Positions 1 through 22,375 of a stretch of 23,639 nt of DNA are shown one piece after another (position 1 is the first letter of the stretch; each line of letters starts with the position of its first letter). The translations under genes were made by a program, and so were the position numbers. The DNA lies in contig RQSC01000028.1 of NCBI GenBank assembly GCA_013416795.1, positions 2,787 to 26,425 of the forward strand, read 5' to 3'. Source of the stretch: Prasinococcaceae sp. CCMP 1430. Taxonomy: Eukaryota > Plantae > Prasinodermophyta. The notes beneath the pieces are model-generated. The model did no database searches. It worked only from the letters and a program-made list of their open reading frames with translations, and was not told where the DNA came from.

Positions 1-1946
1 GCGCCGCCCGCCGCCGGCGAGGCTGCGCCGCGCGCCGCCGGCCACGAAGTGCACGTTCTCCACGAAGGACTGCGAGAGCGTGTTGCCCACCTTGTCCTCC
101 AGCTCCATCGACTCGAGGCCCCAGATGCCGGGCGCGCTGCCGGCGGGCAGCACCACGGTGATGACGTACGGCGCCCACGCGGTGGGGTCGCCCTGGAAAA
201 AGGTGGTGTGGAAGTTGTCGTGGTAGTGGTACTCGAAGTGGGATGTGCCCTGCGGGTCGAGCAGTCGGTAGTTCACGTGGCCCAGCCCGGACTTGTCGTC
301 GCGCGCGAAGTACTCGATGCGCACCAACGTCTCGCCGTTGGGCGCCTCGGGGTTGGTGGGCGCCGCACTCACGTTCAGGTATCCCACGCGGACGTCCAGC
401 TCGGGCGCCGTGCGATCCGGATTGGGCGGCTCGATCTCCACCAGCACGGGCGGCTGGTGGCCCGCCTGATCGAGGAAGGTCGTGCTGGCCTTCCTGAGCG
501 CCTCGTCCTGCATGGTGATCTCCGACACGGAGTAGTTGCCAGGCCACTGAAACTCCGTCAGGACGGTGCTGAGCGTCGCACGGTAGCACACCACGGCCGT
601 GTCGACGCCCGCCGGCGTGGCGTAGCCGCTGCACTCGTCGCTGGCGACGACGCTGCCGTACTCCTGCATCCCGTACGTGTTTTGCCCCGGCTGATCGCTG
701 ACAACGCGCATGTACGTGTAGTCGACATCGTTCTTCTCCAGCAGCAGCCAACTGGCGACGAAGTTGTGCACGGCGTGCCCCTCAAGCACGTCCTCGACGC
801 TGGTCGCCGTGAGCGAGCCCTCGATGTACAGAGGTGCGGCCTTGTCCTCAAGCGGATTGTCCACGTGCAGGCGCCAGCCAAAGTCGTTGGTGCCGGCGAA
901 GCGCTGGTTGCCGACGGTGTCCGTCAGGACGATCTGCGCGGGCGCCCACAGGCCGCTCGTGGCGAAGCGCGACAAGGTGAATGTGTTCGCCAGCACCGAG
1001 GTGTTTCCGTCCTTGGGGTACAGATAAACGTCTGTGTACGTGTCGTCCTCGCTGAAGAGCCGGAAGAAGGCATGCTGGGCGCCGTCGAACACGCCGTCGG
1101 CGGTGTGCAGCGCAATTTCCACGTGCACGCGCTTGTCCTCCTCGGGCGCCCCCTCGACGGCGATGTCCACCCTCACAATGCGGCCGGGGTAGACGAAGTC
1201 CGGCGCCAGGTTGAGCACCTCGAATGTCAGGTCCTCGCGCAGCCGCGAGACGTAGCGGTAGCCGCTCATGATGCGATCGCGGATGAAGTCGTACTTGTCC
1301 GGGCAGCAGGCCTGCAACCTGGCGGGGTTTTCGACGTAGTACGACAGGCTCTCGGCCTGAGTCAGGCCGCGCGGGAACGGGCGGCGCAGGCAGCTCCCGT
1401 CAGCGCAGCGCATGCGCAGCGATGGCGTGCGAGTGCGCAGCTTTGCAACGGACCATGTCCTCGTCGGGATTCTTCTCGTGGGCGTAGGCTGTCACGAAGG
1501 TCGTTTGCTCTGTGGTGGACCAGCCCGAGGTGGCGTTGGGGTCCACGAACCAGCCCCCCAGCGACGTCCAGTTGGCTCGCAGGCCCTCGCTGAAGAGGTG
1601 CGACCACATGAAGTGCGCCTTCTCGTGCAGGATCAGTCGGCGGAGGTGGCGGATGTCCGAGCGGAAGCCCGACTCCATGAATTCGACGTAGCCCCTGCCA
1701 GTCCAAGCCACAGCGGGCGCCAGCGGATACAGTGGGTGCGGGTAGCCGTCCTTGCGCCGCAGGCACCAATCGAAGCCAGGCACGACGTGAAAGCCCGATG
1801 GGAGCTCCTCAAGCATCTCGAGCAGGAGCAGCGCCTCCTCTGGATGCGTCTCGAACGGCTGGAAGGCGGCGGCGGTGTCGTCGGTGATGCCCGAGGTCAG
1901 GCTCACGTACGTCGAGTTCGGCGCGGCGGCGGGCGCGGCGGCGGGC
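1..1946 (-). CDS. Bacterial-type HExxH zinc metallopeptidase with C-terminal beta-sandwich-like repeats; partial at both ends; exons 1454..~1946 and <1..1356
   Basis: Manual minus-strand translation gives ...LILHEKAHFMW...FVTAYAHEKNPDEDM|AESLSYYVENPARLQACCPDKYDFIRDRIMSGYRYVSRLREDLTFEV...DRTAPELDV...GIWGLESMELEDKVGN...ENVHF. The frame stays open to the window edge (452 codons in 1..1356). A phase-0 GT..CAG intron at 1357-1453 restores the EDM|AES motif. The 5' end is lost at the 1921-1946 repeat. Confidence 0.8.
1357..1453 (-). other. Spliceosomal intron (97 bp) in the metallopeptidase gene
   Basis: GTCCGT donor, CTGAC branch-like motifs, CTCAG acceptor. Removal joins the two exons in frame and removes an in-frame TGA. 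Confidence 0.85.
1921..1946. repeat. 26-bp direct repeat, copy 1 (gcgcggcggcgggcgcggcggcgggc)
   Basis: Identical to 3935-3960 by direct comparison; built from a 12-mer gcggcggcgggc unit. Confidence 0.9.
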
Positions 1947-2164
1947 CGCACTAGGTCAGCGGCGAATCGCCCCGCAGAGGCCTCGGTGGGAGTCGGGAGG
2001 GGGGGTATGTGTGTGTGTGGGGGGGGGTCGCATCGGCCCGCCGCAGCGCGTCGGCGGAGCGCGGGCGTGGGCGCGCGCAGCGTCGGGCGTCCCTGCGCGG
2101 CGCCGAGGCGCCCCTCCGTGCGCCCGCTGTACGCTCCCCGCTGTACGCTCTCGACGCGGCGCAC

Positions 2165-2269
2165 CTTTTCGCACAGCGCCTTGATCTCCCTCTCAGGGAT
2201 GAGCTCGAACTCCTGTAGCCGGCTGATGATGCCCTCAATCTGCGGGATCTCCGCCGAGGAGAGCGGCAT
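2165..2269 (-). CDS. PP2A: PP2A catalytic subunit, first coding exon (35 aa), displaced downstream of exon 2
   Basis: MPLSSAEIPQIEGIISRLQEFELIPEREIKALCEK followed by a GTGCGC donor. Aligns by eye with the PP2A N-terminus ([26 protein letters not shown]). The ATG is preceded by a CTGAC...CGCAG|CC acceptor, i.e. a 5'-UTR intron. Confidence 0.8.
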
Positions 2270-2402
2270 GGCTGCGATGCCGCGGGCGCGCAGTGGGTCA
2301 GCGCACCGCCCCCGTGCCCGCGGCCGTGCGCTCGCGCGCCACCGCCGCTGGGCGGGGCGGGTCACCCCTAAAAAAAAAAACGACCGCCCACCCCAAAAAA
2401 AG

Positions 2403-2921
2403 ATGGTGTTCGGCGTGACCTCCGCCATGATCGTCAAGGACTCGTACGTCAAGATCTTCTCGCGCGACTGCTCCGAGTGCTTCGGGTTCGGCAAGATCGT
2501 CTGCAAGCACTGCCGGGGGACGGGGGTGCTCGACAAGACGCGCGGGGGCAAGGACGCCAAGGCGTTCCAGAGCGCCGACCAGCTGGCCGTCAGCGAGAAC
2601 GAGTACCTCTGCCCCTTCTGCCAGGGCGACGGCGTGGTGACCTGCAAGCGCTGCAACGGCTCGGGCATGGCGCACTCGCCCGTGCCCAACCTCGACAGGC
2701 TGTTCATGTCCAAGGGGCCGCAGTTCGACCGCACGATCCGCCTGCAGAAGCTCAAGACCAAGGCCACCGAGCTCGGCGCGGTGGCGTCGAACATGGTCAA
2801 GACCAAAGGGGGGGCGGGCGCGGACGGGGCGGGGGCGGGCGGGAGCGGCGGGGCGGGGGGGAGGTTCAGCGTGAGCGCGAGCGACACGGACGCGCTGCCG
2901 AGCGACGCCGCGCTCGGGTGA
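2403..2921 (+). CDS. DnaJ-like zinc-finger protein (four CxxCxGxG repeats, no J domain); N-terminus possibly incomplete
   Basis: CSECFGFG, CKHCRGTG, CPFCQGDG and CKRCNGSG motifs after a short hydrophobic stretch; strong GC3 bias. Resembles the plant/algal BSD2/ORANGE/LQY1-type class. Confidence 0.8.
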   Translation: MVFGVTSAMIVKDSYVKIFSRDCSECFGFGKIVCKHCRGTGVLDKTRGGKDAKAFQSADQLAVSENEYLCPFCQGDGVVTCKRCNGSGMAHSPVPNLDRLFMSKGPQFDRTIRLQKLKTKATELGAVASNMVKTKGGAGADGAGAGGSGGAGGRFSVSASDTDALPSDAALG

Positions 2922-3093
2922 GCCGGCGGGCGCTCGAGCCGTGAAATTCGTTCGCTGTTACCACACCGACCGCGTCGACGCGCCGCCCGACGCCCGACGC
3001 CCGACGTCCCCCCCGCCCCCCCCCGCGCTCGCCCGCACACCCACACGCACCCGCTGCCGCCGCTGCCGCCCCGAGGAAGCCTCCCTCGCTCGC

Positions 3094-3921
3094 CTACAGG
3101 AAGTAGGACGGCGCCCTGCGCGTGACCTCCGGCCTCCCCCTGCGCGGCGCCTGCTCGAAGCTGGTGAGCGTGGTGTTCATGGGCTCGTCCACCTCCATGA
3201 TGGCGCCCAGGTTGCCGCATCGGTAGCAGTAGTTGGGCGCGCTGAACACCGTGATGACGTTCTTGTTGTGCGCCCAGTTGTAGCCCTCCATCACCAGCTG
3301 GTGCGCGCGCACGACCAGGCTGAGCCCGTTCTTGTAGTTGAACTGCTCGGTGATGTCCTGCCCGAAGGTGTACCCCGCGCCGCGCGGGCTGATGCCCCAG
3401 CCCATGCGCTCGTCGGGGTCGCTCCACACGAGGTCGCACATGGGCCCCTCGTGCGGCACCTCGGTGAAGCGGTCCATCGACTGAATCTGGTCGATGGTGT
3501 CGAGGCTCGGGCTGAGGCCGCCGTGCGGGCAGAAGAGCTGGTTCTCCACGAGCGCCGCCAGCGGCAGCATGTCGAAGAGGTCGGTGAAGTAGTTCCACAC
3601 GCTGGCGCTGCCGTACTTGCGCACGCACTCGTCGTAGAAGCCGTACACCTGCGTGATCTGCCGCGACTCGTGGTTGCCGCGCGTGAGGGTGACGCGGTTG
3701 GGGTACCGCACCTTCATGGCGAGCACCAGCGCCACGCACTCCACCGAGTAGTACCCTCGGTCCACGTAGTCCCCCATGAAGCAGTAGTTGGTGTCGGGGC
3801 ACGGCCCGCCGATCTTGAAGAGCTCGAGCACGTCGTGGAACTGGCCGTGCACGTCGCCCACGAGCGTCACGGGGGCTCGCACGGGCACCACATTGGGCTC
3901 CTCGCGGAACAGCTCGGTGGC
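3094..3921 (-). CDS. PP2A: PP2A catalytic subunit, exon 2 (275 aa + stop)
   Basis: GDVHGQ, GDYVDRG, RGNHE, HGG, RAHQ and [14 protein letters not shown] motifs. PP2A-specific GYTFGQDI...GYNWAH and a C-terminal ...RRAPSYFL. Confidence 0.96.
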
Positions 3922-3934
3922 CTTGCCGGCGCGC

Positions 3935-3960
3935 GCGCGGCGGCGGGCGCGGCGGCGGGC
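3935..3960. repeat. 26-bp direct repeat, copy 2, at the edge of an N-gap
   Basis: Identical to 1921-1946; lies in the 3' part of the PP2A intron. Confidence 0.9.
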
Positions 3961-3961
3961 G

Positions 3962-4445
3962 NNNNNNNNNNNNNNNNNNNNNNNNNNNNNNNNNNNNNNN
4001 NNNNNNNNNNNNNNNNNNNNNNNNNNNNNNNNNNNNNNNNNNNNNNNNNNNNNNNNNNNNNNNNNNNNNNNNNNNNNNNNNNNNNNNNNNNNNNNNNNNN
4101 NNNNNNNNNNNNNNNNNNNNNNNNNNNNNNNNNNNNNNNNNNNNNNNNNNNNNNNNNNNNNNNNNNNNNNNNNNNNNNNNNNNNNNNNNNNNNNNNNNNN
4201 NNNNNNNNNNNNNNNNNNNNNNNNNNNNNNNNNNNNNNNNNNNNNNNNNNNNNNNNNNNNNNNNNNNNNNNNNNNNNNNNNNNNNNNNNNNNNNNNNNNN
4301 NNNNNNNNNNNNNNNNNNNNNNNNNNNNNNNNNNNNNNNNNNNNNNNNNNNNNNNNNNNNNNNNNNNNNNNNNNNNNNNNNNNNNNNNNNNNNNNNNNNN
4401 NNNNNNNNNNNNNNNNNNNNNNNNNNNNNNNNNNNNNNNNNNNNN
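3962..4445. other. Assembly gap (N run)
   Basis: N characters, flanked by GC repeats and poly-C. Confidence 1.
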
Positions 4446-4742: not shown

Positions 4743-6557
4743 TCAGGCGCCGCTCGCCGCACTGACCACCTCGGCCTCCCGCCCCTCCTCGGCTCGAGCG
4801 CGCTCCCCCTCTGCGACGGCGGCGAAGAACCGCTCCAGCTGGGCGCTGTGCTTCGCGCGCGCGGCCTCCTCTTGCGCGGAGCCCGCCGGCCAGCTGGTCA
4901 CGCCGCACGCGTCGCAGTCGCCCCGCTCGCACGCGCCGTGGTCCGCGCGCAGCGAGTATCCTGCCGCCTGCATTTCCGTGAGGGCGGACGCGTACTCGTA
5001 CAGCCGCCGGTCGAGGTGCGTCCTCTCCGCGAGCAGTGCGCGCGCCTCCGCCTCTCGCGCGGGATCCGAGCGCAGCGCCTCCTCCACCTTGTTCAGGGAG
5101 GTGTCGTTCCAGCTCTTCGCCGGAGCGAAGCCCGATCCCTTGAAGTTCCTCCCATCGACGTCCACGAGCCTGGCGGGCCACCCGAAGGCACACCGCAGAG
5201 GCTCTATCGACTGCCTCATGCGCTCGGTGACCAGCACGTGGTCGAAGCGCCCCAGCCTGTGCAGCGCGGTGAACAGGTGCTCGGGATTGACGTTGTCGAC
5301 GCCTTGCTCACCCGTGAGGCGCTGCACCTGCTCGTTGTACCGGAACTTGTTGCCACTTCCCCCCGCCAGGAAGTCCGCGAACGCCGCGCTCGAGTTGACC
5401 TCGAGGCGATGTCGCACCCATCGCGACACGGCGTAGGCGCTCGGGTCGCGCACCACGGTGGCAGTCCGCACGCGCCCGCCGGTGTAGAGTCCCCATGTGG
5501 GCTGCCACCCTTCCAGCGCGAAGTTTCTCTGCGCGCGGTGCTTGCCGTGGATGAGCCTGCATTGCTCAGCCACGTTGGCTCCCTTGAGCTCGCCGTCGAT
5601 CTCCCCTCCCAACATCCCCAGGTTGCAGTTCCACGTGTGCACGGCACCGCCTGCGTCGGGCGATCGCGGCATGGCCAGGCCATTGAGTTCTGCCGTCGTG
5701 CACAGCGTCGAGCCGCCGGTGTAACTCATGTGGAAGAAGAAGAGCCGCAGCTCTCCCTCTCGCGCGTCGCCGCCGGCAGCGGCTCCCCCATGGCCGGGCT
5801 GATGCGCGCGCGGCGGCGGCGGCGGCTTGCCGACGCGGTCGTAGCGCTCCGCCGAGCGCACCACGCCCAGCGACGCCGACGGCGGCACCTGCACCTCCCA
5901 AGTGATGCCGCGCCTGCCATCGGTCAATGCGCTGGCGCTCGCATTGGCGGCGCCTACGCCGGCCGGCGCGGGGGTCGCCCCGCTGCTCCTGAGGCCGCTC
6001 AGCGCGCGCCGCAGGGTCGCCTCCCACCTGCGCGCGCCGCCCCTGCGGCTCGCCCCGCCGGCGCGCCTCGAGCCGCTGTAGTACTTGGCGCACGAGCGCC
6101 GGAACTCGTCGCCGTCCGCGCGCGACCACTCCAATCGCGCTCTCGAGCCGCCGCGCCCGCCGCCGCGCACGCGCGCCGCCGCCTCGGTGCGCTCGCGCGC
6201 GATTGCCGCTCTCGCTCTCGCGCTCCCGCCAGCGATCGCGGCGCCACCCGGCAGCCCCACGCGTCCCTCCTGGCGTGCCCGGGCAGCCGCCGCATCGACG
6301 GCCGGGCGCGCTTTCGCCGCGTTCGGAGAAAGCCACAGCCTCGAGTCTCCCGGCACCTGCTGCAGCGCCCGCGTGCCGACTCCCTCGCCCGCGTATCGGA
6401 GGTAGGGCCCAGCGCCCGCGCGCGCCACCACCGAGGCCACCGCCAAGAGCGCGCCGAGCGCCACAGCTGCCGCCGCCGCCGCCGCCACCGCCGCACCCCC
6501 GCCGCCGCACCGCCACCGCGATCGCTGCTGCCGCGCGCCAACCCCACCGCCGCCCAT
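4743..6557 (-). CDS. Type II membrane (Golgi-type) sulfotransferase-like protein, ~604 aa if unspliced
   Basis: N-terminal hydrophobic anchor (AVALGALLAVASVVA), low-complexity stem, 5'-PSB-like FFHMSYTGGST, 3'-PB-like TVVRDPSAYAVS, NEQVQRL, FDHVLVTE and C-terminal DRRLYEYA. An intron in the low-complexity stem cannot be excluded. Confidence 0.75.
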   Translation of the reverse strand: MGGGGVGARQQRSRWRCGGGGAAVAAAAAAAVALGALLAVASVVARAGAGPYLRYAGEGVGTRALQQVPGDSRLWLSPNAAKARPAVDAAAARARQEGRVGLPGGAAIAGGSARARAAIARERTEAAARVRGGGRGGSRARLEWSRADGDEFRRSCAKYYSGSRRAGGASRRGGARRWEATLRRALSGLRSSGATPAPAGVGAANASASALTDGRRGITWEVQVPPSASLGVVRSAERYDRVGKPPPPPRAHQPGHGGAAAGGDAREGELRLFFFHMSYTGGSTLCTTAELNGLAMPRSPDAGGAVHTWNCNLGMLGGEIDGELKGANVAEQCRLIHGKHRAQRNFALEGWQPTWGLYTGGRVRTATVVRDPSAYAVSRWVRHRLEVNSSAAFADFLAGGSGNKFRYNEQVQRLTGEQGVDNVNPEHLFTALHRLGRFDHVLVTERMRQSIEPLRCAFGWPARLVDVDGRNFKGSGFAPAKSWNDTSLNKVEEALRSDPAREAEARALLAERTHLDRRLYEYASALTEMQAAGYSLRADHGACERGDCDACGVTSWPAGSAQEEAARAKHSAQLERFFAAVAEGERARAEEGREAEVVSAASGA

Positions 6558-8996: not shown

Positions 8997-10811
8997 ATGC
9001 ATTCCAGGACGGCGGCGGCGGCGGCAGCACCGTGGGCGCCGCTGCCCGCGGGGCCTTCCGCGGGCTGCTTTCCCGCGCCGCTGCTGTACAAGGGGAAGGA
9101 GCAGGACTGGGAGAGCGCCGCGCGCGACCACGTCACGGTCCCACACCCGCCGCCGTACGCCGCAGAGGGCGCCGCAGCGGCGGAGGCTTCAGGTGCCTCC
9201 CATGCATTCCCTCCCGCTGCCGGCGCCGGCGCCGGCGCCTCCGGCGACGGCACCGAGTGGGCGGCCGAGCGCGAGCTCGTCGAGTGGGGCGCGGACGCGA
9301 GCTCGTCCGCGCGTCGCGCCTACCGCGTGTACACCAACGTGGGGGCGAGCGACAAGTTCGGCGGGCGCAAGTACGACGTCCACGCCAAGGAGGACGGCGG
9401 GGCCACGCTGATCATGTGCTTTCACGACAGGGCGGGCGAGAGGAAGGACAAGCCGTGCGGTCTCGCCCAGCAGGGGTCATTCTACAAGTCGGATGGCTCG
9501 CTCGGCATCTACGGCGACGCCGACAAGGTCGCACTCATCGCAATGGTGGACGGCCACCAGCTGCCCGCGCCCCCGAGCGAGGAAAACGACCGGGGGTGGA
9601 GCGCAGGCGCGTGCGCCGAGAGACTCAGGACCCACAACGAGAGCGCGACAGCGGCACACGACGAGCTCAATCTGGACGAGCACGCCATTGGCGCCAAGCA
9701 ATCGCAGGAGGACGGCACTGGCAGCGCAACGAGTTGCGCTGGGACAGACGGGCGGCCGTGCTCCTGCGAGCCCGACCTCGCCTTCGTGCTGCAAATTATG
9801 GACGAGCTCGCCGACAACTACTGCGTGGACCTGCGCGAGGTGTACGCCATCGGCTTCGGGGAGGGCGGCAGGATGGCGCTGGAGATGGCGGTGGCGCCGC
9901 CCACGCCGAAGTACGGCATGCGGGTCAAGGGCGTGATCCCCATCATGTCTCTGCCCTCGACAGACGCGACCGCCGTGTTCGGCTCGTGGGATTCGATGCA
10001 ATACGTGCCGACGCCGTACCCCCTCGCCGATGTGGCGGGAAACAAAACGGACTGGCCAGGACCACCCCCACAAGTCCACGACGGCACGGCGGACGACAGC
10101 GTCGGCGGCCACTCGCAGGCTGCTCCAGTCCACGTGTTGCACGTCCACGGCCTGGAAGACGACCGCTACCCGCCTCAGCTCTTCGTCGTCGAAGATGCAA
10201 CGCCGCCATCTGCCGTGGGCGCGCAGGCCACCGGAGGAGGAGCGTGGCACGCGCCCGACGGAGGCGGCAACATCACGGGCGCCCACGGCACGGGCGCGCA
10301 GGCGGCGCAGCCTCAGCAGAAGTGGCGCGTCGATGCGACCGCACTCGGGCGGCCGCAGCTGCGATGCGCGAGCACTCCCACCGAGAGCACGACCTACAAT
10401 GAGGGGGAGAACGGGCCAGACGACGGCGACACGACGGTGTGCCTGGCGCACATGCACGCGGCTTGGGGCGCGCCAGCCTTCGGCGATGCCCTGTTGTCCT
10501 CCTCGTGGGAGTCGGCGCTCGGGAGCAACAACGGCACCGCCGCAGTGCACGCTGGCGTGGCAGTCGTGCGCGAAGATTTTGGATGGCGCGCGGACGAGGG
10601 AGATGCAGGCGGCGTCGACGCCGAAGCCAACGTTCCGTACGAGTGCTACTCCGCGCTCGTGCCACACGCCAGCAGCAGCGCCGATGACGGCCTCAACAGG
10701 CGCTACACGCAATGCCTCTTCGAAGGAGGTCACACGAAGCAAGTGTGGTTTGACCAGCTCGTGCTCGACTGGGTGCGCTGCGTGCGCAACGAGAGCAACT
10801 GCCCAGAGTAG
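8997..10811 (+). CDS. Alpha/beta-hydrolase of the PHB-depolymerase/LpqC/feruloyl-esterase type, lacking the nucleophilic Ser
   Basis: DLAFVLQIMDELADNYCVDLREVYAIGFGEGGRMALEMA (family: DDVxFv..l.d.l....ciD..rvyatGfSNGg), VLHVHGLEDDRYP and C-terminal GGHT. Single long ORF with GC3 bias; start codon uncertain. Confidence 0.75.
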   Translation: MHSRTAAAAAAPWAPLPAGPSAGCFPAPLLYKGKEQDWESAARDHVTVPHPPPYAAEGAAAAEASGASHAFPPAAGAGAGASGDGTEWAAERELVEWGADASSSARRAYRVYTNVGASDKFGGRKYDVHAKEDGGATLIMCFHDRAGERKDKPCGLAQQGSFYKSDGSLGIYGDADKVALIAMVDGHQLPAPPSEENDRGWSAGACAERLRTHNESATAAHDELNLDEHAIGAKQSQEDGTGSATSCAGTDGRPCSCEPDLAFVLQIMDELADNYCVDLREVYAIGFGEGGRMALEMAVAPPTPKYGMRVKGVIPIMSLPSTDATAVFGSWDSMQYVPTPYPLADVAGNKTDWPGPPPQVHDGTADDSVGGHSQAAPVHVLHVHGLEDDRYPPQLFVVEDATPPSAVGAQATGGGAWHAPDGGGNITGAHGTGAQAAQPQQKWRVDATALGRPQLRCASTPTESTTYNEGENGPDDGDTTVCLAHMHAAWGAPAFGDALLSSSWESALGSNNGTAAVHAGVAVVREDFGWRADEGDAGGVDAEANVPYECYSALVPHASSSADDGLNRRYTQCLFEGGHTKQVWFDQLVLDWVRCVRNESNCPE

Positions 10812-11217
10812 GTGGGCCATCGGCGGCATTGCTCCTCGTCCCTCCTCATGCTTCCTTCATTCACCAATGCATCTTGGCCGGCGTACCGGCCGGCCGACTC
10901 GGCCGTCACACTCATCCACGCACGCACACTTCACCACACGCGCAGGTGCTCGTGGGACCACGTACACACGACATCTTCAAGGTGCATGCATGCTCTTCCA
11001 GCGACGGGCCGCTCATGCACAGGACTGAGAGCAGAGAGAATCTCTCTGGCAGTCCCGCCGCAGGCGGTCGCCAACGATTACGAGTAGGATTGCCCCCTGC
11101 GCGCGCGTGTCGGGCGACCACCGCCGGCATCTACGCGCAGCGAGTAAGGGGGCACGCTTATGGTACACATAGGTCACAGGTATGCGAGGACCGCGCACGC
11201 GCGCGCGCGCCGCGAGC

Positions 11218-19400: not shown

Positions 19401-20165
19401 TCACAGGTCCTCCTTGGCCTCCGCCGCCTTTTCCGCGAGCTTCTTGGCGAGCTCCTCGCGTGCCTCCGCGCACGTCTTGCCTTCGGGATCCATTGAGTTG
19501 ATCTCCATCTGGAACTGCAGCGGCGAGTTGGCGGGGATCTTCGGCGGCGAGCCGCGCTCCCCGTAGGCCAGGTCGTAGGGGATGTACACCTCCCACTTGT
19601 CGCCGACGCACATGAGCTGCAGCGCCTCGGTCCAGCCCGCGATGACCTGGTTCGGCGAGAACGATATGGTGCCTGCGTCGAACTGCTCGCCCGTGCGCAG
19701 CTGGCCCGCGTATGTGACGCTCGCCTGGTCGGCGGCCGTTGGCGAGCGCGCGCCGTCCGCGGGAACCTCCTTGATCACCTTGAAGTGCAGACCGCTCGGC
19801 AGCACCTGCACGCCGTCCTCCGCGGCCTTCTCGGCGAGCCACTTGATGCCCGTGCGCTTGTAGTACTGTTGACGCCGGTCGGAGCGCCCACGCGCGAGCG
19901 CGAGCGCGGGCGCTTCGTGTCAGACCTGGTGGCGCGGGCGCGCGGGCAAAGCGCGGCGTCCACCCGCTCTCTCGCGCCCACTCACGCGGACACCGCACTC
20001 ACTCCCCCGCAGGCGCCCACGCAGGCCCTCTTCGCCCCCCCGTCGCACGCCCCCCTCGCCACCACCCTTGCAGCGCCTGCGCCGCGCGCGCACCTTGGCC
20101 ATCTTCTCCCCCGGGTCGGCGCTCGCGCCCGCAGCGCCCGCGGCGGCGAGCGCGGCGGCGAGCGC
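19401..20165 (-). CDS. FKBP: Secretory Mip/FkpA-type FKBP peptidyl-prolyl isomerase; exons >20165..20094 and 19865..19401; start in gap
   Basis: Signal-peptide-like ALAAALAAAGAAGASA, then DPGEKMAK|YYKRTGIKWLAEKAAEDGVQVLPSGLHFKV (FKBP N-terminal-type motif), VTYAGQL, QVIAGWTEALQLMCVGDKWEVYIPYDLAYG and IPANSPLQFQME. Phase-0 GTGCGC..AACAG intron at 19866-20093. Confidence 0.9.
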
Positions 20166-20356
20166 NNNNNNNNNNNNNNNNNNNNNNNNNNNNNNNNNNN
20201 NNNNNNNNNNNNNNNNNNNNNNNNNNNNNNNNNNNNNNNNNNNNNNNNNNNNNNNNNNNNNNNNNNNNNNNNNNNNNNNNNNNNNNNNNNNNNNNNNNNN
20301 NNNNNNNNNNNNNNNNNNNNNNNNNNNNNNNNNNNNNNNNNNNNNNNNNNNNNNNN
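20166..20356. other. Assembly gap (N run)
   Basis: N characters; probably hides the starts of two divergent genes. Confidence 1.
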
Positions 20357-22375
20357 GGCCGCGGCCGACGGCGGGGAGCGGCGAGGGCGCGCTGAGGACA
20401 GGGACGATGGCGGGTGAGTGGCGCGCGCGCGGGAACGCGCGCGGGGGAGCTTGCACGCGGGCTCGCGCGCGTCCACTGGCGTGGACGCGGCGGGGACGCG
20501 CAGTGCCTTGTCGCCTTGCGTGCTGCCCTCTGACTCGCGCCCCGGGTGCGCCGCCTCGCGGGCCATCGTGTGCGCGTCATCGCAGTCGGAGCGGCGCTCG
20601 CGGCAGCCGCCGCCACAGCCGCAGCCGCTCGCGCGGCCGCTCGCACAGCCGCGGGCGGGGACGGCGCGCGCTGCGCAGCAGCCGGGACGTGCACCTACTC
20701 TTCGTGCTGCAGCTGCCTCGATGCGCTCCGTTTTGGTGGTGCCTCGTGCACTTCATGCTTCCGGTCGCCATCGTCACGTGGACGTCGGATCCGCTCCTCA
20801 GGAGGAGCAGCGTATCCAGAATGTGGGTGCTCAACGAGGGGCGGAGAGTACCGAGCGCGCCGCCCGAGCTCGCGCCCGGCGCGCCGCTCGAGACCCTCCC
20901 CGACCAGCTGGTGGTGCTCGAGGCGCGCGCCTCGGATGGACGGCGTCGCGTCGCCGACGGCGAGGCAGTCATGGTCAAATGGGACGGTGCCGCCGGCACC
21001 GTGTGCCCCGGTCGTGCCGCGCTCTGCGCGTACGAGCTGCGCGGCGGAGAGAGCACGCTCTCTCCCGACGTCGAGCGCGAGCGCGAGCGCGGAAACCTGC
21101 GCTACTCTGAGTGCGATGAGCTGCAGCTCGGGGTCGGATCGCATGAGGTCCTTGGCGCAGACCTCACGACTAGCGCTCCGCGACGGCATACGTCCATACC
21201 CGAGGCGAACGGATGGGGCGTAGCCTCGCTTTGGTGGCGTTCCCTGCGGAGTCTGCGCGTAGTTGCTCGCAAAAGGGACGCATCTCGCGCGGCCCTTGCG
21301 TTCGCCCCCGGCACAGAGCTTGAGCTGCCGTACGTGCATACCCGCGTCCTGATGACGTCGAGCAGCCCGGACGAGACAGCGATGTGCCCGCTGTGGGTGC
21401 CTACTGCAGCTGACGGAGAGCATCCCGCCGCACATGGCGAGCGAGATGCCAAGGCAAACGAGAGCGCGCAGGAGGCTGACGGCAGTAGCGCGCTTTGCGA
21501 GGCGGGAGACGCCGGAGAGGGGGAGGTCTGGCGTGGTGCCAAGGCCAAAGCCGCGCCGGTGTCTCCTGCAGCGCAGCCAGTACCAAATGGTGGCGGCCCC
21601 CCAGGTGCTGTGGATGGTGTCCGAGCACAGGACCAATATGCACGACTTCACGACGATCCGGAGATGATCGTGAAGTACGTGCACTCTCTCACGGGCGAAA
21701 CGACGCGCGAGCGCTCGCAGACAGACCTGCATTTAGTGGGGAGCAGTGGGATGCAAACGTACACGGTCTGGAATAACACGCGGCCAGGGTTGGACTCTGG
21801 CAGCGATTATGTGTTTCGAATGTACTGTGCGCGCGGAGACCTCAATGATGAGGCGTGGCAGCAGGGGCGACATCTGGAGGAGCCGTCTGAGTGGGCGCTC
21901 ATCGCGCAGAGGTAGGAGGCGCGCTGCGTGGCTGCGCACGTGCGATTCTGCCACCGGCGCTCTCGACGGTGCTGACGCCTGCGCGTCGCTCTGCTTCGCT
22001 CGACACGCCCGTCTGCCCGTACGCGCAGCAACGTGGTCGCCCTTTCAGGCGCCCGTCGCCTGGCCACCCTCGAGGCGCGTGCTGCGCGCAAGGCACGCAG
22101 GACAAGCCTCGATGCGGCCGATCTTGCGCTCGCTGCCGACGCTGAGATAGTGGAGGCGTACGCCCTCGAGGTGCGTCGGCGGCGTGTCTAGCTTGAGTAT
22201 GCTGCTGCGATCCCTGCTGCTGTGCGCGCACATGGGACAGGCCGTGCGCTGACCCGAGCTGACTCGCCACCCATTGCCCTGCATCTACCGGCACGCGCAA
22301 CAGGTCGAGGTGGACGAGCCTGATGCTGCGGATCTCACAGTCGACGATGCGACCGGCGAGGCGAGCCACGAGTGA
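20357..22375 (+). CDS. Hypothetical protein, four visible exons: <20357..20413, 20586..21911, 22029..22170, 22304..22375
   Basis: Three introns (GTGAGT..CGCAG, GTAGGA..CGCAG, GTGCGT..AACAG), each with a CTGAC branch motif, are phase-compatible (2, 2, 0) and give one open frame ending ...DATGEASHE*. The ORF-track stop at 21913-21915 falls inside intron 2. Confidence 0.65.

Follow-up and report, generated by a model that had tools for sequence, protein, structure and literature searches.

The permuted PP2A gene of a Prasinoderma coloniale draft scaffold is very probably an assembly artefact

The window analysed here, the whole stretch of 23,639 nucleotides, belongs to a Prasinoderma coloniale draft scaffold, on whose minus strand exon 2 of a PP2A gene (3921-3094) precedes exon 1 (2269-2165). 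This permuted layout is very probably an assembly artefact of some kind, be it the exact reconstruction that we favour or a variant of it. We prefer an artefact because of three independent sources, namely the conflict with the reference annotation, a spliced transcript and the break of a neighbouring peptidase-like gene. We found no evidence of new biology at the PP2A locus. The parts of the gene and the repeat associated with them are as follows:

2165-2269, minus strand: exon 1 of the PP2A catalytic-subunit gene, 35 aa, 35/35 identical to residues 1-35 of database protein P0126
3094-3921, minus strand: PP2A exon 2, 275 aa and the stop, 275/275 identical to P0126 residues 36-310
1947-2164, minus strand: 5′ part of the PP2A intron, contiguous with exon 1; donor GTGCGC at 2164-2159, CTGAC at 1958-1954
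3922-3961, minus strand: 3′-terminal portion of the PP2A intron, holding repeat copy 2 (3935-3960) and the AAG acceptor (3924-3922)
1921-1946, no strand assigned: first copy of the repeat (copy 1), with 2.2 units of a GC tract of 12-nt period, exactly identical to 3935-3960

A sequence-only reading of this DNA had described the permuted order of a 35-aa exon 1 and a 275-aa exon 2, the intron signals listed above and a 310-aa product with a CEK|ATE junction. The translations agree with it, and the donor, the CTGAC and the acceptor are all readable in the sequence, as is an intron of at least 257 nt, the minimum obtained by joining both repeat copies. The exons were compared with P0126 separately and not as a joined sequence; exon 1 plus exon 2 are 100% identical to this 310-aa EukProt protein of P. 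coloniale (PRCOL_00002431-RA), which matches both the junction and the length exactly. The product, which ends in ...SYFL, is an ordinary protein. Exon 2 encodes a Metallophos domain (Pfam PF00149, E = 1.1e-42, exon 2 residues 17-210), thousands of PP2A-C matches at 70-75% identity were returned by a database search, and colinearity with annotated PP2A-C proteins extends over the full length, the exon 1-encoded N-terminal helix region included. Compared with green-algal and plant PP2A catalytic subunit genes (PPP family), only the exon order in the scaffold is odd. An environmental relative (P0008) is 96% identical over exon 2 and carries an equivalent junction (CAK|, followed by 11 residues not given here). 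In a metagenome scan with P0008 as query, the best of the matches listed was a generic PP2A of 74% identity, and no Prasinoderma locus appeared among the matches listed.

The P0126 protein is also encoded on a public JGI/IMG contig of 1,021 nt. This length leaves no room for an intron of 257 nt or more beside a CDS of 933 nt, so the contig is intron-less, that is, a spliced transcript. PRCOL_ identifiers are names of genome gene models, and the PRCOL_00002431 model thus requires colinear exons. In the organism, PP2A is almost certainly an ordinary gene of exon 1, intron and exon 2. The trans-splicing that a single genuine copy had been thought to require is not needed, since the annotated reference gene model is colinear. 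The P. coloniale gene set derives from a PacBio/NextDenovo assembly of 22 chromosomes (PMC7455551). We take the present draft to be a different assembly, because the window contains 7 N gaps, all flanked by low-complexity sequence of 78-92% GC. No PRCOL identifiers were found in the supplements of the genome paper or in the searchable literature.

The 26-nt direct repeats at 1921-1946 and 3935-3960 are identical and lie 2,014 nt apart from start to start; these values, like all coordinates of the sequence-only reading, held when checked in the sequence. No match like this pair arose in 100 dinucleotide-preserving shuffles. By TRF, the repeat is a GC microsatellite with a period of 12 nt (2.2 units in copy 1 and 3.0 units in copy 2). 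The PP2A intron thus includes a (GCGGCGGCGGGC)n tract, at which the assembled sequence ends: around copy 2 the tract spans 3927-3961, up to the last base before a gap, and copy 2 itself is a contig end, one base short of this gap:

3962-4445, no strand: scaffold gap of 484 N, to which block 1921-~2400 probably belongs

Copy 1 is followed by C and copy 2 by G, hence the copies do not simply abut, and one would have to assume additional repeat units or an error at an end. A search of the window revealed related tracts with 3 mismatches at 6143-6168 and 20138-20163, the latter stopping 2 nt before another gap (20166).

To the left of copy 1 lies the gene in which the break is best seen:

1-1921, minus strand: an HExxH peptidase-like gene, represented by its 3′ part, in two exons (1921-1454 and 1356-1, the latter extending past the window edge) separated by an intron (1453-1357)

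This gene is cut off at about 1921/1922. Its homologues align across the EDM|AES junction, and both algal and bacterial homologues conserve the N-terminal domain. Residues 308-480 of an independent ORF, P0285, are identical to window positions 1921-1403 at 171 of 173 residues, from PNSTYV onward; P0285 stems from a relative that differs by 2 substitutions over these 173 aa and is not provably the same strain. Identity falls from 99% to noise exactly at 1921/1922, and P0285 residues 1-302 have no match anywhere in the window. Before PNSTYV, P0285 reads RRFGLSIASAST and the window PAAAPAAA. The repeat had been taken as native to the peptidase gene, and removal of the loop had been expected to reopen the 5′ end of this gene at PAAAPAAAP. 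Neither proposal survived the comparison: the N-terminal 302+ residues are absent from the window, so that PAAAPAAAP is not peptidase sequence. With peptidase homology stopping at the left edge of copy 1, we read copy 1 as the likely start of a misplaced PP2A-intron block and not as part of the peptidase gene. The RF of GRFAADLV, upstream of copy 1, was considered as a remnant of the conserved R[FY]GCT motif and rejected, as nothing aligns beyond 1921.

The same comparison bears on a genuine rearrangement, in which recombination at the 26-nt tract (Campbell type) would have inserted a circle of 2 kb, bearing PP2A and the zinc-finger gene described below, into the peptidase gene, or a permuted gene would be used with trans- or back-splicing. 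Circle-mediated permuted translocations are reportedly known from cattle KIT colour-sidedness and wine-yeast region B, and the formal signature is present here as it is there, a circularly permuted unit between short direct repeats. Unlike in those cases, one repeat is a contig end and the reference annotation of the same species carries a colinear gene. The target gene, as seen in the near-identical relative, has no tract at the junction, and it does not appear to resume after copy 2, where the gap of 484 N is smaller than the missing 906+ nt, gap sizes being estimates, and where contig B shows no peptidase homology. Integration would also disrupt a conserved PP2A catalytic gene and a peptidase gene at once. 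Since the repeat is not native to the peptidase gene and excision of the loop does not restore it, the Campbell-type interpretation loses its main support, and a genuine rearrangement of either kind seems hardly credible.

The gene located between the two PP2A exons, with its spacers, provided a further line of comparison:

2403-2921, plus strand: DnaJ/BSD2-type CxxCxGxG zinc-finger gene (Pfam BSD2_CRD, 1.3e-07; exact protein P0001)
2270-2402, no strand: spacer of 133 nt from the PP2A ATG to the zinc-finger ATG
2922-3093, no strand: convergent 3′ spacer from the zinc-finger stop to the PP2A stop, with one AT-richer island at 2941-2963

The exact zinc-finger protein, for which viral and prokaryote-genome scans gave no matches, clusters with EukProt P. 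coloniale PRCOL_00002432-RA (P0003), and this gene and the PP2A gene, PRCOL_00002431, bear consecutive numbers. The reference annotation of the zinc-finger gene includes an 84-nt in-frame intron at 2786-2869. In the annotated model P0003, which is an annotation model only, a first exon MADEGDGAYGILSG is spliced onto 2403, and an AG acceptor is indeed found at 2401-2402, just 5′ of this position. The first exon occurs in none of the six frames of the window (best chance match 6/14). Because it is missing, we suspect a second hidden false join somewhere within 2270-2402. The convergent spacer 2922-3093 is judged to be probably real, given the consecutive gene numbers and the missing first exon.

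The exact reconstruction that we favour, and which appears reasonably probable from the arrangement of the sequence, is that block 1921-~2400 was misplaced and has its home in the 484-N gap. A piece of ~480 bases would have ended up on the opposite side of a GC-rich repeat from where it belongs. The block comprises the tract, the 5′ part of the intron, exon 1 and its upstream flank, and in the scaffold it sits at the truncated 5′ end of the peptidase-like gene. The true order on the plus strand would be the peptidase gene (minus), its missing 5′ part together with zinc-finger exon 1, the zinc-finger gene (plus), PP2A exon 2 (minus), the intron, exon 1 (minus) and contig B. Both 26-nt 'copies' would then represent a single genomic tract shown twice, and the block would be flanked by both false joins, one at 1921/1922 and the other at a point in 2270-2402. 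The block after the repeat measures 456 nt, as against 484 N in the gap. At its right end, the block shows no convincing overlap with contig B: the best match, of 19 nt with 2 mismatches, falls in GC-rich low-complexity sequence and is not significant, and neither is a 9-nt near-match read by eye.

We chose the tail-to-tail over the head-to-head arrangement on account of the size of the gap and the absence of the zinc-finger exon. In the mirror image of this reconstruction, the head-to-head order of PP2A exon 1, 133 nt and zinc-finger ATG would be real, and the exon 2 block 3094-3961 would be the misplaced piece, with a false join in 2922-3093. Such a join could hide in the low-complexity runs of this spacer, (CGCCCGA)3, C-runs and (CCGCTGCCG)2; the number of false joins equals that of the favoured model, and either orientation fits the consecutive PRCOL numbers. 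However, the first exon of the zinc-finger gene must then lie upstream of the whole PP2A gene, across an intron of >1.4 kb, since the window covers everything nearer and does not contain that exon. It would also have to be a coincidence that a gap of 484 N lies next to copy 2 and agrees in size with block 1947-2402. To a lesser degree, the lone AT-richer island between the two stops suggests a real convergent pair. We therefore hold the mirror arrangement to be unlikely.

A tandem duplication would involve at least two real copies of the 2,014-nt unit of PP2A and zinc-finger gene, collapsed by a short-read assembler; the zinc-finger gene would then truly adjoin PP2A on both sides, and only the peptidase join would be false. 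A collapsed repeat yields exactly such a permuted layout with identical ends, and 1947-3934 is continuous, without N. Against this, P0126 has one EukProt accession only, and the unit lacks the first exon of the zinc-finger model. Moreover, an assembly error has to be assumed at the peptidase junction all the same, so that a duplication is added while no artefact is removed. This explanation is distinctly unlikely. The same grade broadly applies to a real tandem duplication or circle integration taken together, which we regard as improbable. That the culture contains the unit as an extrachromosomal circle or as a tandem array of at least two copies, with the scaffold a collapsed view that is wrong at the peptidase junction only, is highly doubtful.

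The favoured misplacement resembles the misjoins and misplaced contigs of short-read drafts at GC-rich low-complexity tandem repeats, where a contig breaks in the repeat and is then wrongly placed by scaffolding or gap closing: the sequence breaks at a GC tract of 12-nt period, one copy is a contig end beside an N gap, both contig ends share a short sequence, flanking genes are truncated without N and independent data disagree. The junction coincides with a contig end and gap and with a low-complexity tract, and independent sequences of the same or a near-identical genome (P0285, PRCOL_00002431 and zinc-finger exon 1) contradict the join. The evidence backs the sequence-only reading in its view that mis-assembly through GC repeats is most parsimonious. 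The place of copy 2 beside the 484-N gap and the absence of the annotated zinc-finger first exon are further facts that fit an error.

A misjoin hidden in this manner, with no N to mark it, would truncate the peptidase-like gene, drop the first exon of the zinc-finger gene and split a conserved PP2A gene. Gene prediction could also yield a chimeric protein here, since one open frame that includes PP2A exon 1 continues through the intron as far as the peptidase gene. The main value of the analysis is one of quality control: where other findings on this draft depend on gene order, on fusions or on missing exons in the vicinity of GC-rich tracts, they need a check against the long-read reference.

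Beyond the 484-N gap lies one more gene:

4743-6557, minus strand: neighbouring gene, whose 604-aa product has a hydrophobic stretch at the N-terminus and shares 99% identity with independent protein P0260 along the whole length

This protein gave no Pfam or NCBIfam match, and no EukProt member is present in its cluster or in that of the peptidase exon. By our own reading of the motif, it may be 'sulfotransferase-like'. The tract at 6143-6168, inverted and related to the 26-nt repeat, is carried by this gene.

Re-reading of the window confirmed the layout described in the sequence-only reading, with repeats, exon positions and splice sites as follows, together with the two neighboring genes:

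1921-1946 and 3935-3960: direct repeat GCGCGGCGGCGGGCGCGGCGGCGGGC (copies 1 and 2), 2,014 nt apart, read from the sequence
2269-2165, minus strand: PP2A exon 1, MPLSS...ALCEK, then GTGCGC
3921-3094, minus strand: PP2A exon 2, AAG directly before it, ending ...SYFL and stop
2403-2921, plus strand: zinc-finger ORF, present in the protein collection and clustering with EukProt Prasinoderma coloniale PRCOL_00002432-RA
1-1921, minus strand: peptidase-like gene with a HEKAH motif; intron at 1453-1357 verified (EDM|AES)

Exon 2 carries a Metallophos domain (E = 1.1e-42), and a word search with it retrieved a 310-aa cluster including PRCOL_00002431-RA (P0126). We aligned the PP2A exons one by one to this reference: residues 1-35 are exon 1 (35/35) and residues 36-310 exon 2 (275/275), so that the splice junction and 310-aa length proposed earlier proved exact. 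The equivalent junction of P0008, an environmental relative with 96% identity over exon 2, is CAK|ATELF. In the rebuilt intron CTGAC lies 47 nt upstream of the acceptor, compared with ~43 nt in the verified peptidase intron. P0126 was additionally found on a JGI/IMG contig of 1,021 nt. Since this is too short for the 933-nt CDS together with an intron of 257 nt or more, the contig lacks the intron and is most simply a transcript, which answers the question of whether the junction occurs in RNA.

PRCOL_00002431 (PP2A) and PRCOL_00002432 (zinc-finger) are names of gene models on the genome, numbered consecutively; according to the P. coloniale genome paper (PMC7455551), the PacBio/NextDenovo assembly comprises 22 chromosomes. 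Permuted exons are impossible in a model built on genomic sequence; hence the reference assembly has exon 1, intron and exon 2 colinear, beside the zinc-finger gene. Judging by its N gaps, the window appears to be a separate, draft assembly of the same species (Prasinoderma coloniale). The permuted PP2A gene is very probably an assembly artefact of some kind and no real feature.

The window contains seven N gaps and is therefore a scaffold built of short contigs; low-complexity sequence of 78-92% GC borders 7/7 of them. The 26-nt repeat, matched in 0/100 shuffles, is a GC tract with a 12-nt period (2.2 units at copy 1, 3.0 at copy 2). At copy 2 the tract extends to the final base of its contig, the copy stopping 1 base short of a 484-N gap (3962-4445). 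The next base keeps the period after copy 2 (G) and breaks it after copy 1 (C), which suggests that the real tract exceeds 26 nt. Tracts of this type are recurring sites of contig breaks in this assembly, and two related ones were observed:

6143-6168: related GC tract, inverted
20138-20163: related GC tract, CCGCGGCGGCGAGC x2, 12-nt period, 3 mismatches relative to the repeat, ending 2 nt before the gap 20166-20356

The peptidase identity of gene 1-1921 is weak, resting on profile matches to Peptidase_Mx/Mx1 and TIGR04549 that are all sub-threshold; no Pfam or NCBIfam model scored above threshold. Its HExxH family is large, with 250 representatives at E <= 1e-3 (P0285, P0225, P0229, P0142 and P0143 among them), and is common to GC-rich algae and bacteria (Myxococcales, Poribacteria, Deltaproteobacteria, others); the block YAH..NP.EDM is invariant across it. 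The gene may be of bacterial type, now with introns, in an alga. In homologues, a separate conserved N-terminal domain (150-300 residues) closes with R[FY]GCT, a few residues ahead of the PNSTYV position; no part of this domain was found in the window.

A full-library search with 1945-1403 as query returned P0285, a 480-aa ORF with the same in-intron stop codon at its end, from a near-identical relative that is not certainly the same strain. From PNSTYV on, 171/173 residues are identical. Immediately upstream P0285 has ...DRRFGLSIASAST, where the window has another sequence, and P0285 residues 1-302 had no match in any window frame. Since identity is lost at 1921/1922, where copy 1 has its left edge, this copy is part of the PP2A-intron block and not of the peptidase gene. 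Removal of the 2,014-nt segment, earlier thought to reopen the peptidase gene, would thus not restore it. True circle integration, also put forward earlier, or trans-splicing is highly improbable: the peptidase orthologue lacks the tract, the reference model is colinear, and the peptidase gene does not appear to resume past copy 2, where the gap, by its estimated size, is smaller than the missing 906+ nt and the contig beyond it shows no peptidase homology.

Mis-assembly at the GC repeat, ranked first in the sequence-only reading, is supported and can be refined. Assembled sequence breaks off at the tandem tract of the PP2A intron, and a small contig starting in the tract (1921-~2400) would have been set at the broken peptidase end and not in the gap past 3961; the block past the repeat measures 456 nt, against a gap of 484 N. 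The plus-strand order would be peptidase (-), missing peptidase 5′ part with zinc-finger exon 1, zinc-finger gene (+), PP2A exon 2 (-), GC-tract intron, exon 1 (-), upstream flank, then the contig beyond the gap with a 604-aa gene (-). We somewhat favor this exact reconstruction, with block 1921-~2400 misplaced. A real tandem duplication collapsed in the assembly agrees with the unbroken sequence 1947-3934 but still requires the peptidase misjoin, and the single EukProt accession for P0126 counts weakly against it; we regard it as improbable.

The consecutive PRCOL numbers place the zinc-finger/PP2A adjacency at either 2270-2402 or 2922-3093. The annotated zinc-finger model P0003 (PRCOL_00002432-RA) begins MADEGDGAYGILSG, spliced onto the ATG at 2403 (AG at 2401-2402), and this first exon was not found in the six window frames (best chance match 6/14). 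Because all head-to-head upstream sequence (spacer, exon 1, intron, exon 2) is in the window, the missing exon lies in sequence not represented in the scaffold, which favors the tail-to-tail side (2922-3093) as the real one and points to a second join hidden within 2270-2402. The mirror case, with the exon 2 block as the misplaced piece, fits the gene numbering equally but is at odds with the missing exon and with the 484-N gap, and is rather unlikely.

Within the zinc-finger gene, an 84-nt in-frame G-rich GT..AG segment (2786-2869, plus strand) is an intron in the reference annotation (P0003) and is retained in ORF calls on environmental contigs (P0001, P0002, P0004). The segment may be a genuine intron or a low-complexity part of the coding sequence that is retained.

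Beyond the gap lies the 604-aa gene named above:

4743-6557, minus strand: protein of 604 aa whose N-terminus has a hydrophobic stretch; motif FFFHMSYTGGS

The motif looks sulfotransferase-like; Pfam and NCBIfam gave no match for the protein. It occurs on independent contigs at 99% identity, with one further, more distant relative only (44%). ATG-to-stop ORFs 9480-10829 (-) and 20698-21732 (-), for which Pfam returned nothing, are matched exactly by proteins of the MMETSP transcriptome set (P0282, P0284); both regions are therefore transcribed, and the called frame or strand may be wrong in such GC-rich sequence. Finally, an 800-aa open frame (1400-3802, minus strand) reaches from an antisense context of PP2A exon 2, across exon 1, intron and copy 1, into the peptidase gene, exon 1, intron and peptidase gene sharing one frame; a gene predictor run on the scaffold could output a chimeric protein from it.
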